Below, piece by piece: positions 25,833-33,679 of a DNA stretch of 64,000 nt (within the stretch, counting starts at the first letter, position 1; every line of letters starts with the position of its first letter). The translations under genes were made by a program, and so were the position numbers. Where the stretch lies: assembly GCA_000708835.1 (NCBI GenBank), contig DF237055.1:124001-188000 (forward strand). The letters run 5' to 3'. The notes under the pieces are model-generated. The model was not told the DNA's origin. It did not search any database and saw nothing but the letters and a program-made list of their open reading frames with translations. This DNA is from Klebsormidium nitens (taxonomy: Eukaryota > Plantae > Klebsormidiophyceae).

Positions 25833-26582
25833 GCTGAGCTGCCTCCTTTACCAGCTCAATCTACGGTCGCTGACCATTAGTTCGAAACTACATAGCTCTT
25901 GCCTAGCACTCTTCGGTCAAAAGTGTTCCGCAGCTTTGAAAAGGGCTCCGGAACGGCGTCCCAAACTCCTGCCAATCAACGTTGCCTGCAAAGCTTTGTA
26001 ATTAGCTTCCTCTCAAAAAATACTGCTTGCAGGTTTTGGAACTTGCTGCAAGCACATTCGGGAGCTTTCTGTAGGTACCACATGCATCAATTCTACGAGG
26101 TCGACCGAGAAGCATGTATCACAATCAGCTACTCCAAAATCTCCTCAAAGTTCAAACAGATTAGCAGGTTATTCCACTTTGCTGTAGACCTGGAAGGCCC
26201 GTCTTTTGTCAAAGAACTTGCTGGCAGTCATTGCTCTTGGCAAAATGCGTTTTTGACGTTTTTTGTTCAAAGTACCTACTTCGAAGCGCAGCAAGAGAAG
26301 ACTCGGAGAAGACTGGGAGATGCCGGCCTGCAGGGGGCCTTGCGCCGGCGGCCTGCCTGCCGATTGATTCATCTCGGCAAGGTGACGCACATTTTTGACG
26401 GACCGGATGAGCGTTTACATATCATCGAGCGGTTGTGACTCGCGCCCTTGAAGAGGGGGACGGTCCATTCGACATTGGGACCACATGATCGATGCACCGT
26501 CATTGCAGGGTATAATACTATTGGTATTACCAGGTACGGTAGTATTTAAGTAGTATTAGCTTTTGCCTCTGCAGCGCAAGGG

Positions 26583-29500
26583 ATGGCGCTTCCTGTGAGC
26601 TTTGGTGACTGCTTGAAGCTAGTGCACTCAATCCAGCAGATTGCTGCTGACGTTCAGGTAAACAAGAATCTCTCCCGGCAGCTTGCTTGGTGGGCCGGCA
26701 TTGTCCATGGCGTGCTGTCTGAGGCGCAGAAGAAGGCAAGCTGAGTGCAATTGCCCAAATTGCAACGCTTAAATCGGTCCTCACCGATGCGCAGGCCCTC
26801 CTCATAGAGTTTGCGGGCACAAAATGGATGCGGAGAATGTGGACAAGGGCGAAGGATTTCCAAAGTTTTCAAAACATCCATCTTCAGTTGGATGCGAGCG
26901 TCCAGGCTTTAGCACTGGAACTGATGCTTAACATTGCAGTTCCAACGGTTAGTGTTGAGGAATTAGAGGAGAACGAGGAGGCAGACCTGGAGGAGGACAG
27001 CGTCACAGTCAAGCGGCTGCAGGAAGTGGCCAATGAGTTTCCTAGTCAGGATGGGAAGATGGAAGCTTTGTTGGCAGAGTGGTCGGAGGTCCTCAGCATG
27101 AGGCAGAGCGCTCCGAGGGCAAGCAAGGTCCCTGAACTTCCTGCAGGTTTGAAAAGGGAGGAGCTGACAGTTGGATCTAGGATTGGGGCGGGGGGATTCG
27201 GCATTGTGTATGAGGGGCAATGGAACGGCACCCCCGTCGCTGTCAAGGAGCTCCCCTACGGTGCAGACCTTAGCGAGGATGAGAGGTATGCCTTCAAGAA
27301 AGAGGCTGCTTACCATGCCGATCTCAGGCACCCTCACGTCGTTCAGGTCTTTGGGACGTGCACAGACGACCACCCATTCTACATTGTTATGGAGCTCATG
27401 AGCGGGGGCAGCCTGGCGAGCCTCATTAAGAGGAGAATCAGCGGGCATGCGGCAGGGGGGGCGGGGAGCCCTTTTCAGGTGTAGGTGGCCCGTGACATAA
27501 TGCTCCAAATTGCCAGAGCCATGGTCTATCTTCACAGCAGGCAAATTATCCACCGAGACTTGAAGGCGGCAAACATCTTGGTCAGGGTTCTGGATGAGAG
27601 CACTGGAGCGTGCGATGTCAAAGTTGCAGATTTTGGCTTGGCCACAGTGAAAACAGCAACTTCAGTGCACATGTCAAGGGCTGGCACAGGCCGCTGGATG
27701 GCCCCAGAGGTTGCTGACGACGGACCCTACTCAGGGAAGTCCGATGTTTACAGCTTCGCGGACCTGCTTCGAGATCCTGAGTGGGGGCGTGCCTTTCAGC
27801 AGCCTGAAGACAGATATGGCCGTCATGAGGGCGGTTGACAGGGGGGTGCGGCCGGAGCTTCCTGAAAGCTGCCCTGCCGAGCTGCGGGCGCTCGTCGAAA
27901 GCTGTTGGCAGCAGGACGACAGGGTGCGGCCGGGCTTTGCAGAGATCTGCAGCAGGTTGGTAGAAATGGGGGCGCTCGATAAGCCAGAGGGGGTTGTTCA
28001 ACCGGGCGGCCAGGTACTTCCACTGGCAGCCACAACGGAAGGGGAGCTGGAAGGCAAAATCCCAAGCGAGACGGCGGTTGAGAGCCTAGACGATGTCAAA
28101 CGGAGGGCTGCGGGAGGAAGTCCGGGAGCGCAGTACGAGCTGGCGCTGTGTTACTACGTTCCTCGGTTAGGTTCTCCTCTAGATTTCAGCCAGGCGGTTG
28201 AGTGGTTGAAGAAAGCGGCGGATGGAGGGGTGTCAAGAGCTCGTGCATTGCTTGCGAGATGTCACTTTGATGGGGTCGGGCTTGCAAAGGATGAAGTGAA
28301 GGGTGTCCAGTTGGCAAAGATGGTTGAGGAGGACCCCCTGGCAAAGTGCGTTTTGGGAGGGGCTTACTTGGTTGGCCAAGGGGGTGTCGAAAAGAGTGAA
28401 GCAACTGCAGCGACTTTGTTTGCCTCTGCAAAGGAGCTTCTGGAAGTACTTGCTCAAGACTCTGAGGTAAGGGCAGAAGTGCATGTTCCGGCAGATTCGT
28501 TTGGCCTGCTCCTTATTGTGGGCATTGTTGCTTGAAACATAAGTATTCATTGTGGGAGTACACAAGCACTACTTTCTGTGGACCTGCAAGGGTGACTGCA
28601 AAAGTCAGGTGTTCTGCTTTCTCATCCATTGAAGCTGACCTTCCGCTTATAATTTGATGCAACAGTTTCAGCAGTAGAGCACTTTTTGCCACGTTACTAC
28701 TTCACAGTAGTCAGCATGCGACTTACTACTTGCCTTGCATCAAGCACACGTAGCACAACAAAAACAGAAGCGATCAGGTGCCCCTTCTTACGAGTATGCC
28801 AGAATCCTGTGGCTCAGTGATGGTGCGGTATTCCTTCTGGCTATGGGTTCTTCCTTTAGATTGTCAACCCAAAGTCCTAAGAAGAGTTACTTGTCAGCTT
28901 CCTTTTCTGCTAGAAGTCATGCAGAGGGCCTACGCAACCTGCTGATTTTTAATAATTGAGCTTGGGTTGACAATTTCTCTTGTGATCCTCCAAACCTTTG
29001 ATTTCATATATGAAATCAAAATGTCCAGCAATTCTTTTCGCCCAGGTCTCCCAACCTCTTCTTACATTGCTCTTGGATCTTGCGCAGTCATAGTCTTAAA
29101 GAAACAGAGAACTGTAAGTCTATGTTTTTGTCACTCCTCAAGGACTTCCTTGAAAAAGCTGATGCTTGTTCCGGTTAGTTTTCTCTTGGTACACTTGATT
29201 CAACGTGCGCGTATGTCGCTTAGTCCAGAAAATTAACTCGTTGTTTCTTATCGAAGGGTTGTGCTGACGGACCCAATGCTTTCCCCGCCGTAGGCACCAG
29301 ACCTCCCCGTGATCCAGGCGAGCCTTGGAAACTTCTTTTTGTACGGGCGCGGGACACCGACAGACTCCGACAAGGCCTTGGCATTGTACGAGAGGGCTGC
29401 CGAGCAAGGGCATGCTGCCGCGCAGTCTGATCTCGGTGATTGCTACTTCATCGGCCAGGGAACGGAGCAGGACGAAAAGGTAGCCGTAGCATGGTACGAA

Positions 29501-31432
29501 AAAGCCGCCGAGCTAGGGTTTGCAGGCGCCCAGTTCCACCTAGCCCGATGCAAAGAGCGCGGCCGGGGCACCTCCCAAGACGCGATCGGAGCTTCCCGGT
29601 GGTACTCCACTGCTGTGGAGACATGGGGCAGAGGGGATCTTGCCCGGTGGTTCCGTCAGAACACCCGTGCGGGCCTTGGCGACGCACTCAGGGTCGACGC
29701 TTTCAGCAGGGAGTTAGTGTGGAGAGTTTCTCAGATGAGGCTTGCATGCTTGGGTCACTGTTCTCTCAACACGAAGGTTCTGGCGGCCACTTTGCAGCAA
29801 GGAAGCCCTGCGTTGCAGATGCTGGACCTGAGTAACAACGAGATTGGAGCGCAAGGGGCCCTCAAACTGGCGGCTGCCCTAGAGCAGGGGTTCCTCCCAG
29901 GGCTGCAAACGCTCCACCTTGGGTGCAACAAAATTGGGGAGAAAGGGGCCCAAGCGCTGGCAGGCGCCCTAGAGCGAGGATCCTTCCCGGCGCTGCGGGT
30001 TGTGGACCAGAACGAGATTGGAGTGCGAGGGGCCCAGGCGCTGGCAGTCGCTCTAGGACGGGGGTCCTTCCCGGTGCTGCAAACGCTGAGTCTTCGGAAG
30101 AACGAGATCCGGGAGGGGGGCGCCAAGGCGCTGGCGGCCACCCTAGAGCGTGGGTCCTTTTTGGCACTGCGGGCATTGCACCTCAGTTGGAACATGATAG
30201 AAGCGCAGGGGGCCCAAGCGCTGGCGGACGCCCTTGAGTGGGGATCCTACCCAGCGTTGCAAGAGTTGGACCTCGAATCAAACACGATAGGAGAACTGGG
30301 GGCCCGAGCGTTGGCGGCTGTCCTAGGGCGGAGGTCCATTTCGTTTCGGCTGAAGGTCTTGAACCTCGGTATGAACGAGATTGGAGTGCAGGGGGCCCTT
30401 GCACTAGCGGGCGCCCTAGAGCGGGGATCCTTCCCACAGCTGCGGGCGCTACACCTAATGGCCAACGCGATTGAGGAGCAGGGCGCCCAAGCGTTGGTAC
30501 TAGCACTCGAGCGGGGGTCCTTCCCAGCAATGCGAGAGTTGTCCCTCAGTAAGAATAAGATCGGAGCGCTGGCGGCCCAGGTGCTGGCAGGCGCGCTACA
30601 GCGGGGCTCCCTCCCAGCGCTGCAGGTAGTGGATCTTGGCGAGAATAATATTGGAGCGCGGGGGGCCAGAGCGCTGGCAGACGCCCTAGTGCGGGGGTCC
30701 CTCCCGAAACTGCAAGAATTGGACCTCAATTGGAACGACATTGGCGCGCAGGGGGCCCAGGTGCTTGCAGCCGCCCTAGGCCGGGGGTCTTTCTCGGCGC
30801 TGCAAACGCTAAACTTCGGGGGAAACGGGATCGGGGCGCAGGGGGCCCAAGCCCTGGCAGGCGCTCTCGAGCGGGGTTCTTTCCCGTCACTGCAGACGCT
30901 GCATCTACGGACAAACGCAATCGGGGATCAGGGGGCCCAAGCGTTGGGGATTGCCCTAGAGCGGGGGTCCTTCCCAGCACTGCAAACGCTCACCCTTTGG
31001 AATAACGAGATTGGAGCGCAGGGGGCCCAGGCGCTGGCGGCTGTCCTAGAGCAGGGGTCCCTCCCGGCGCTACAAATGCTGGACCTCGGCAAGAACGAGA
31101 TCGGAGTGCAGGGCGCCCAAGCGCTTGCGGCCGCCCTAGAGCGGGGCTCGTTCTCGGCGCTGCTCGACCTAAGGCTCTCGGGCAACGGGATTCGCGAGGA
31201 GGGCGCCGAAGCGCTGGCGGCTGCTTTGAAGCGGGGTTCCTTCCCGGCGCTGCAAACGTTAAACCTTGGGGGAAACGAGATCCGGGAGCGGGGCGCCCGT
31301 GCGCTGGCGGCCGCCTTGAGAAAGAGACCCTGCCCAGCACTACGAAGCCTTACCCTCTGGCACAACGGGATCAAGGAGGAGGGGCGTCTCATGCTGGAGG
31401 CCTCACTCCCCGGTGTCGCTATAGATTGGTAG
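26583..31432 (+). pseudogene. MLKL-like 4-helix bundle + TKL kinase + Sel1 repeats + 18 LRRs; disrupted
   Basis: ATG at 26583; N-terminal helical domain (VQVNKNLSRQLA...LKSVLTDAQALLIEF...WMRRMW...FQNIHLQLD). Kinase motifs GAGGFGIVY, VAVK, HRDLKAANILV, DFG, WMAPE. About 6 Sel1 repeats. Intron 28467-29293. LRR ORF ends 31432. Lesions: 1-nt frameshift ~26735, TAG at 27482-27484, frameshift ~27761. Confidence 0.82.
29801..31400 (+). repeat. Coding tandem array of 18 LRRs, mostly 90 bp / 30 aa
   Basis: Consensus GSFPALQxLxLxxNxIGAQGAQALAxALER; unit 3 has a 2-aa in-frame deletion. Confidence 0.93.
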
Positions 31433-33679
31433 TGCACCCGTTTGTATGACAGGTTCGTATTCACGCTCCAAAGCAAATCTTTGACTCGAATTGCTTTTCC
31501 ATTTAGACGCTCGATTCATCACGTCTTAAGGAAGCAGGCCATTGCGCGAGGATAAGATCAGGTCCGTTTTGCTTCACAATTGCACACGCGGATCATGATC
31601 GCAAGCGTATGTGTACACCCTTTGTTCTTTTCTTTTCGCATGTGGAGAGCCCACACCCTCTCATTTGGAAAGGGTTTGCTTACGGAATCGTGATTCTCTA
31701 GGTAGTGGCTCGGACTGGTAAAACACCGGATCCGTCCCCGGAATCATCATTAGTTTTCGGTCGATTTCTTACACAGAGTTTCATAAAGAAGTGTCTCTGA
31801 CCTTTCCGAGGGGCCCTGAACAATCTCTGGGTTTGGTCGCCTCAATCATATTCTTGGGTAGGGGTAACAGTTTTTGCCGAGTCTCCCTAAAGCCAACTTC
31901 TGGGTCGGTCGATGGCAGTCGATTGCTGTCGATCGTTCTTAAGGTGATTTGCGGCTTGACCATAAGGTCGGATCTTGTCTCCAAACCAGTTTTCTGAGCT
32001 GACGGTTAAGGAGTCTTGGCAGCGACGGTCGCAGTCTTCGCGGACTTCAGAAACAACGTGTAAATAACTTTTCAGCTTTCAGTGCCCGGTATTTCGCGAA
32101 CTGGAATCTGAACAACAAAGCAAAGGGAAGCTACTAAGGTGTTACTCTCGAAAAAGCGCTTGTTCAGAGGTTTCCAAAAGCATTCAGTACTACTTGGAGC
32201 ATAGGACTGCCCTCTGCGAAAGTCGAGACCCTTCTAATGACTAGATCTTTCTTGAGTTTCTTTCTGGTACGCTAAGCGTTGATCAGAACCACAAACGTCG
32301 TTGTTGATCGACCCCTAGTCTCTGCTCCGCACTGAAAAGGACCCCCGCCCTTCTGCAGGAAACTGTCGCTGCCTGACGTCATTGCGTCTGCATTGCTGTC
32401 GAGGATCTGGTGGAGTTAACGTTAAGTTTTGCACAGGTGCTTGGTGTGCATAGTCAGTGGTTCTTTATCTATTATGTCAGTGTTCGAGGCTTGTAGCTTG
32501 TTGAAAGTGGCCTTCGGAACGCTTGAACACCTTCGAGTGCACCAGATGAGTGCGTGGGACAAAGTAGCCCCACTGTAAAATCTACATTATATGCTGTTCA
32601 ATAGGTATAGGCCTAACCCTGACGTACCAAGCCTAGGGTGGCACACTAAATTCGGGTTGCTTGGTTTCTCGGGTAAAGCATACAAAGCCGTTTTAGATAG
32701 ATCTGTTTGTCACCCTACGAGTACCCTGTACATCACAGAAGGCCAAAAGCTGGTCACAATTCGGTCGTCCATCGCAGCTGCCGGTTTTGACTGCATTAGC
32801 ATAGACCCGCCCCCATTCAACATGACTGGCACGGTACTAAGTATTTAGATCCACGTGTACGCTGATGCCGTGTATATAGACAACTATACGTGTACCGTAC
32901 CGTTCGTGCAAGGTGTTTTACAATGGTGGCTGCGCGCGGACCGGCGGCCGCATGCGCGACTTGTTTGTTTCCATAAATGATATAGGAACGTCTGATCATG
33001 CCATTTTGATGTGTGACTATAGCGAAGTGCGCGACCGTCGTGCATGCATATATGCCCAATATCCGGAATATGAAAGTATTGATCAAGTCGATCTCCAGCA
33101 TGACTATAGTGCTAGTGTCACTAATTGAACATGTTGTCCCGACTCCTGAACAGGGACTTACTGCCCAGCGCACGTATCATTACGTCCGACCGACCAGCTC
33201 CGAGTCGATCCACGTCGCGAATCATTCGCGCTGACGAGATTACTTGCCGGCATTGAAACTTAGGGTGCAGCTTTTGTCCTTGGGATTTGTCGAATCCATA
33301 TAACTGCTTCATGATGCACTGAGCGCAAGAATCACCAGTACAGGCTCAGATCGACGATCCTGGCTAACGAACATGGCGGTCTGGTGTTCCAGATCCCCCA
33401 TTTCAGCGAGCGCAGTTGGAGATAAGATATACCATTTCCTCAAAGAGCAGAGAGCTCGCTAGGGCATCGAAGGTCCATCAGTGGAGTTAAGGGTTGCATC
33501 CATGTTGCCTTGATAATTCCAAGCACCGATTTTCGCTTCCAAGTTCCTTGATTCATGACCACTGTTTCCGTGCATTTTTGCCAGGAAAGGCCCCTTACCT
33601 ACGTAAATACATCTCAATAGCATAACAAGTACCTAGCTAAACCACTCTTCCGACAAGCTTTATGCGATTCCCGGACACA

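Follow-up and report, generated by a model that had tools for sequence, protein, structure and literature searches.

In animals MLKL carries out necroptosis, and in seed plants it has a part in immunity; in both, its kinase is dead and it relies on further proteins to be activated. The animal protein (structures 4BTF and 2MSV/6UX8) has an N-terminal four-helix bundle and brace followed by a kinase fold of the TKL group; this fold is a pseudokinase, and the protein is switched on by a separate kinase, RIPK3. Plant MLKLs, represented by AtMLKL2 (6LBA) and AtMLKL3 (6KA4), have a HeLo bundle, a multi-helix brace and a kinase-like domain, and in those of seed plants the tail is rich in serine and the residues of canonical phosphotransfer are missing (Mahdi et al., bioRxiv 10.1101/681015). 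Receptors of the nucleotide-binding, leucine-rich repeat class (NLRs), of the form CC/RPW8-NB-ARC-LRR, also begin with a helical-bundle executioner and end in leucine-rich repeats (LRRs), with a NB-ARC or NACHT switch in the centre. The gene described here lies on the forward strand at positions 26583-31432 of a 64,000 nt stretch of Klebsormidium nitens DNA (assembly GCA_000708835.1, contig DF237055.1, positions 124,001 to 188,000), which we refer to as the window. It belongs to a small Klebsormidium family whose intact members are predicted to combine in one chain an MLKL-type bundle, a brace of two helices, a kinase of the TKL group, several Sel1 repeats and about 18-25 LRRs of the ribonuclease inhibitor (RI) type. 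The window locus itself is very probably a transcribed, correctly spliced and recently inactivated pseudogene of this family.

The locus is a string of open pieces in which each of the four modules can be recognized. The 5′ untranslated region (UTR) is represented by 26557-26582, the RNA contigs of runs X6 and X12 both starting at 26557. The first part of the bundle (26583-26737; helices 1 and 2, about 52 aa in the frame of 26583) is 86 % identical to residues 1-57 of the K. subtile protein P0001 and aligns with paralogs that match the Pfam family MLKL_N. Helices 3 and 4, together with two brace helices, follow in a shifted frame at 26741-27160, as placed by the MLKL_N match and by the helices of a P0001 model; the MLKL_N match itself, in the piece 26738-27130, is weak (E-value 1.2e-4, 22 bits, profile positions 57-141 of 142, where the Pfam cut-off is 27 bits). 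The TKL-type kinase domain (27167-27959), with 76 % identity to P0001, is matched by PF07714/PF00069 in three pieces (26828-27481, 27485-27835 and 27711-28532), in the translations of which VAVK, HRDLKAAN, DFG and APE can be read. Sel1 repeats (PF08238) occupy the 3′ end of the last of these pieces and the start of a 707-codon frame at 29309-31429; the first block (28113-28466, E-value 1.4e-13) ends exon 1, and the second, with a linker to the LRRs, lies at 29294-29770 (E-value 1.7e-22). The rest of the 707-codon frame is taken up by about 18 RI-type LRRs (29771-31429; LRR_6, E-value 2.4e-66), given as units of 30 residues in a repeat listing and falling in a single tblastn frame, and a TAG stop codon follows at 31430-31432. 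Pfam searches of all pieces of the window gene and of the intact paralogs gave no NB-ARC or NACHT domain, in keeping with the initial annotation of this locus, and neither a Roc GTPase nor a COR domain was matched in the same sequences.

The kinase, Sel1 and LRR parts belong to one gene and are carried on one transcript. Single contigs from three runs in three studies (X4, X6 and X12) span 26557-28464 and 29292-31453 and omit an 827 nt intron (28467-29293) with GT and AG at its ends, the removal of which, read against the sequence, preserves the Sel1 frame. These three runs are very likely to be RNA, since the spliced joint is present in them and missing in the DNA run X1. The contigs depart from the window at 31453, 21 nt past the TAG stop, and continue at about 32359 (matching again from 32360), so that a second intron of about 906 nt (31453-32358) lies in the 3′ UTR; the last exon (32359-32780) has an approximate end, the contigs running 411-426 nt past the joint. 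The gene thus has two spliced introns, and its RNA is present in every RNA run examined. Separate genes for kinase and LRR had been named in the initial annotation as a finding that would refute it. On such a view the two would be neighbours and their fusion an artefact, and the two large frames do lie 827 nt apart; we regard this as very improbable, because the gap is bridged by single spliced contigs with a frame-keeping GT..AG joint, which link the kinase and LRR parts, and the public gene model KFL_010600040 also unites kinase, Sel1 and LRR.

The initial annotation had placed the four modules in one reading path, and although all four are present on this one transcript, the path is broken by three lesions. 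These were defined in a nucleotide alignment of five paralogs, the window copy and four paralogous loci. The first is a deletion of 10 nt after 26737, at the point in the bundle where helix 2 gives way to helix 3, which shifts the frame (also seen as a frame change in tblastn) and leads to a TGA at 26742-26744. The second is an in-frame TAG at 27482-27484 in the kinase, where all four paralogs have GAG and where DNA and RNA contigs read as the window does, and the third, a second frameshift, is a deletion of 2 nt after 27760 (27760-27761), directly past the kinase sequence DVYSFA. A tblastn comparison with P0001 likewise gives two frame changes and one in-frame stop. A frameshift in the bundle had been allowed for in the initial annotation, but the two kinase breaks had not been foreseen; the kinase that was described as intact does retain VAVK, HRD, DFG and APE, but not its frame, and a complete kinase core in a single frame is found in the paralogs L003 and L004 and not in the window copy.

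Two explanations that would leave the gene functional concern the lesions themselves. An intact gene with frame breaks that only reflect errors of sequencing or assembly, for which nothing speaks but the usual caution over indels, is highly unlikely, because the DNA run and the RNA contigs of three separate studies agree with the window letter for letter throughout the stretch and are free of indels. That the lesions are real but bypassed, by a cryptic 83 nt intron (26658-26740), stop read-through and ribosomal frameshifting, is scarcely credible: a GT at 26658 and an AG at 26739-26740 would put the reading back in frame at the first lesion, but it is implausible that a single mRNA should undergo three separate recoding events. 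The cryptic intron was rejected as a candidate in its own right, its joint being found in no RNA contig and its splicing being such as to remove bundle helix 2.

The window copy therefore cannot make the single-chain, four-module protein that had been assigned to it, the three disabling lesions being present in its mRNA as well and the first of them stopping translation after 53 codons. From the 5′ end of the mature mRNA the frames have 53, 218 and 112 codons, and a 953-codon frame starts at the ATG at 27744. Lesions relative to paralogs that are real in the DNA, retained introns and the presence of RNA are together the properties of a transcribed unprocessed pseudogene. Exact flanks across the first lesion had no matches in metagenome contigs, where the related loci were distant kinases only; the 218 aa ORF of the window copy has no exact match on record, and no orthologous locus from another strain was found.

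Several observations weigh against the pseudogene interpretation and suggest that some product of the locus may still be under selection. The lesions are all crowded into the first 1180 of the roughly 4021 coding nucleotides (the first 29 %); with random placement the chance of this is 0.025, although this is a post hoc figure based on three events. The 953-codon Sel1-LRR frame is still open, with about 2.8 kb free of stops and frame changes behind the 1.2 kb that contains the lesions. Furthermore, a TGA as early as that at 26742, with an intron downstream in the 3′ UTR, should trigger nonsense-mediated decay, yet the window-gene contigs of the three RNA runs have a word depth of 90-114, although depth in contigs is a poor guide to how strongly a gene is expressed. 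The locus could thus make a useful shortened product, comprising a remnant of the kinase C-lobe, the Sel1 repeats and the LRRs, from the ATG at 27744 by internal initiation or re-initiation, and such a product might serve the intact members as a partner that only senses or as a decoy; the presence of the transcript in all RNA runs agrees with this. However, 26 ATGs precede that at 27744 in the mRNA and no contig or joint points to an internal start, and we consider a product of this kind unlikely and prefer to view the window copy as a pseudogene.

As far as computation can tell, profiles and structure together make a convincing case that the N-terminus of the family is an MLKL-type bundle, which bears out the four-helix bundle proposed in the initial annotation. 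The intact paralogs are above the MLKL_N cut-off at 45-47 bits (45 bits for L004:9605-11170 and 46.7 bits for P0151, profile positions 2-141 of 142), and P0001 scores 26.8 bits. When the PDB was searched with a ten-sequence profile (A1) of the N-terminal 200 residues, MLKL was matched with E-values of 1e-14 to 2e-13 (mouse MLKL 4BTF, 1.4e-14; the human MLKL N-terminal domain, about 2e-13), and with a profile made from Klebsormidium sequences only, the human MLKL N-terminal domain ranks first (E-value 0.002). An AlphaFold2 model of P0001 residues 1-200 (pLDDT 76) predicts a bundle of helices and, after it, two long ones; the helices of the second part of the bundle are at 62-117 and the brace helices at 128-155 and 161-185. 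The best true Foldseek matches of this model are MLKL executioner domains (TM 0.66-0.72, normalized on the target), and the VIA-align Z-scores are 12.8 for 4BTF, 12.7 for 6UX8, 12.2 for AtMLKL2 (6LBA), 11.1 for AtMLKL3 (6KA4) and 10.7 for the NRG1 CC-R domain; the alignments with AtMLKL2 and AtMLKL3 take in 164-166 residues, including the brace, up to about residue 175 of the model. It must be set against this assignment that a Z-score of 12-13 by itself lies within the chance range for helical bundles, and since such scores are not decisive for this type of fold the homology leans mainly on the sequence profiles. In terms of MLKL features the family therefore appears from model and alignment to have both the bundle, which in the window copy is split by the 10 nt deletion, and the brace helices. 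Kinase structures dominate a fold search with a 475-residue model (Z-score about 32), in which the packing of bundle on kinase gets no signal, and in a feature search of the ESM Atlas the leads obtained, to clusters of MLKL_N, MCAfunc and RPW8, all remained below threshold (0.75-0.78).

The dead pseudokinase that is a feature of the MLKL family is not found in the Klebsormidium proteins. VAVK or VAIK, HRDLKAAN, DFG and APE occur in the window pieces, P0001, P0151 and L004, and the solved structures closest to the Klebsormidium kinase are the active TKLs MLK, Roco4, B-Raf and TAK1. The catalytic motifs are thus kept, as had been remarked from the window sequence, where animal, seed-plant and moss MLKLs are degenerate. 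The moss proteins P0154 (Ceratodon) and P0157 contain the bundle-brace-kinase unit, with 28-32 % identity over 81 % of the query, and have HGE or HGD where HRD is expected as well as a second kinase-like domain.

Of the proteins in public libraries, the nearest is the ortholog-like P0001, a transcript ORF of 555 aa from K. subtile, which is 74 % identical to the window gene (74-86 % across its parts) and has an intact frame through bundle and kinase. We note that its residues 495-555 no longer align with the family from the first Sel1 repeat on and that it ends at 555 aa; this end could represent an isoform with bundle and kinase only, intron retention or a further lesion. A search for intact paralogs of the same layout, as the initial annotation had advised, was successful, and two were found, both with about 57 % amino acid identity to P0001. 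In the K. nitens paralog L004 (DF238009.1) bundle and kinase lie in one uninterrupted frame, and in its NCBI model KFL_010600040 (P0152) the kinase, Sel1 repeats and first LRRs are joined by splicing, the contig terminating within the LRRs. This model begins at an internal methionine, and the 132 upstream codons in the same open frame (L004:9605-10000) encode the MLKL_N bundle (45 bits); the public annotation therefore hides the bundle, and with it the family from domain-based surveys. The second intact paralog, L003 (P0151), is on the JGI contig Ga0590114_0002871 and consists of two long frames, one of 525 aa with bundle and kinase and one of 974 aa with Sel1 repeats and LRRs (LRR_6, E-value 1.3e-89). 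A word search seeded with the Sel1 region of L003 (length range 536-1704 aa) brought up only KFL_010600040 and generic, mostly bacterial Sel1 proteins, and no annotated protein with all four modules at full length.

Two further JGI loci (L001:647-4807 and L002:9573-13590) have the module order of the window gene, and each contains two frameshifts and one stop, at positions that differ from those in the window; L002 also reads HFG in place of DFG. Three of the five known copies (the window copy, L001 and L002) have thus been disabled independently, although the JGI contigs are possibly from another organism. Pairwise dN/dS values among the paralogs are 0.14-0.20, with dS of 0.8-1.2, from which it follows that the copies are old, that purifying selection acted on them through most of their past and that the lesions arose recently.

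The sequence upstream of the intact paralog L003, L003:1-8500, contains intron-free ORFs with DVNP (PF19060), EsV_1_7_cys (PF19114) and a weak KilA-N match, and it resembles the DNA of a giant virus (phaeovirus-like) and may be an endogenous insert. L003 and L004 are homologous only from L003:8588 on (90 % nucleotide identity), the flanks being different, and nothing in the window, L001, L002 or L004 corresponds to the virus-like proteins.

A comparison with the described systems shows where the algal family departs from each. Animal MLKL ends after its pseudokinase, whereas the algal proteins keep VAVK, HRD, DFG and APE and add Sel1 repeats and LRRs; none of the plant and moss MLKL relatives has either type of repeat. 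The C-terminal repeat array is a feature held in common with NLRs, but the central NB-ARC or NACHT domain of that class is absent and a protein kinase stands in its position. Proteins of the ROCO/LRRK type, in which Roc and COR accompany LRR and kinase, differ both in these two domains, which the algal family is without, and in the order of the modules, which in the algal family is kinase and then LRR. Somewhat similar layouts are seen in uncharacterized proteins from public assemblies, in which MLKL_N and a kinase with HRD and DFG are combined with a repeat array at the C-terminus, of Sel1 (P0119), of TPR (P0073, which has two kinases) or of ankyrin repeats (P0067). These have 29-33 % identity to the Klebsormidium family and include repeat types other than Sel1, and MLKL_N scores 59-63 bits in P0119 and P0073; the association of an MLKL bundle, a live kinase and a repeat array is therefore wider than Klebsormidium. 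We note that the gene for P0119 (648 aa; on a contig of 4772 nt, Logan SRR22388013) lies between two genes on the same strand, one of them encoding MoCF_biosynth, with gaps of 20-28 nt. The contig is gene-dense and looks bacterial, and the bundle-kinase-Sel1 combination may thus also occur in bacteria.

In the literature searched, on MLKL together with Klebsormidium, with streptophyte algae, with Sel1 or with LRRs, we found no description of the MLKL-kinase-Sel1-LRR architecture, and K. nitens figures in reviews for NLR-like receptors only. The NLRtracker survey of 33 plants (Plant Cell 2024) includes Chara and Chlorokybus and not Klebsormidium, and the part of its table examined gives the classes MLKL, MLKL-PKin and MLKL-PKin-PKin with no MLKL-PKin-LRR among them.

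The domain content of the intact members suggests how they might act. With the bundle at the very N-terminus and no signal peptide or membrane segment apparent, they would be cytosolic. The LRR/Sel1 part could serve in ligand binding or in keeping the protein inactive, and the kinase might phosphorylate in cis or in trans, in a role like that of RIPK3 towards animal MLKL; the brace would then free the bundle for action on membranes or in signalling. The sensor-kinase-executioner role in immune surveillance without NB-ARC or NACHT, proposed in the initial annotation for the window locus, is thus one that we would infer from domain content for the intact members. It is a tentative extension of this that the intact members are self-contained intracellular death or immune switches, with an LRR/Sel1 sensor, an active kinase and a bundle released in cis, that they preserve the ancestral active-kinase state of the pseudokinase MLKLs of land plants, and that the window copy, L001 and L002 are recent casualties of birth-and-death turnover of the immune type. 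The family suggests how a single protein might lead from sensor to executioner without a nucleotide switch of the NLR type, and it is a candidate for the ancestral state of plant MLKLs. The window copy is dead, and an intact paralog is the proper subject for experiments.

None of the ten other long ORFs of the window has a Pfam family. A 634-codon open frame without a Pfam family is located on the forward strand at 59438-61342, in a stretch of 62 % G+C at the end of the window.

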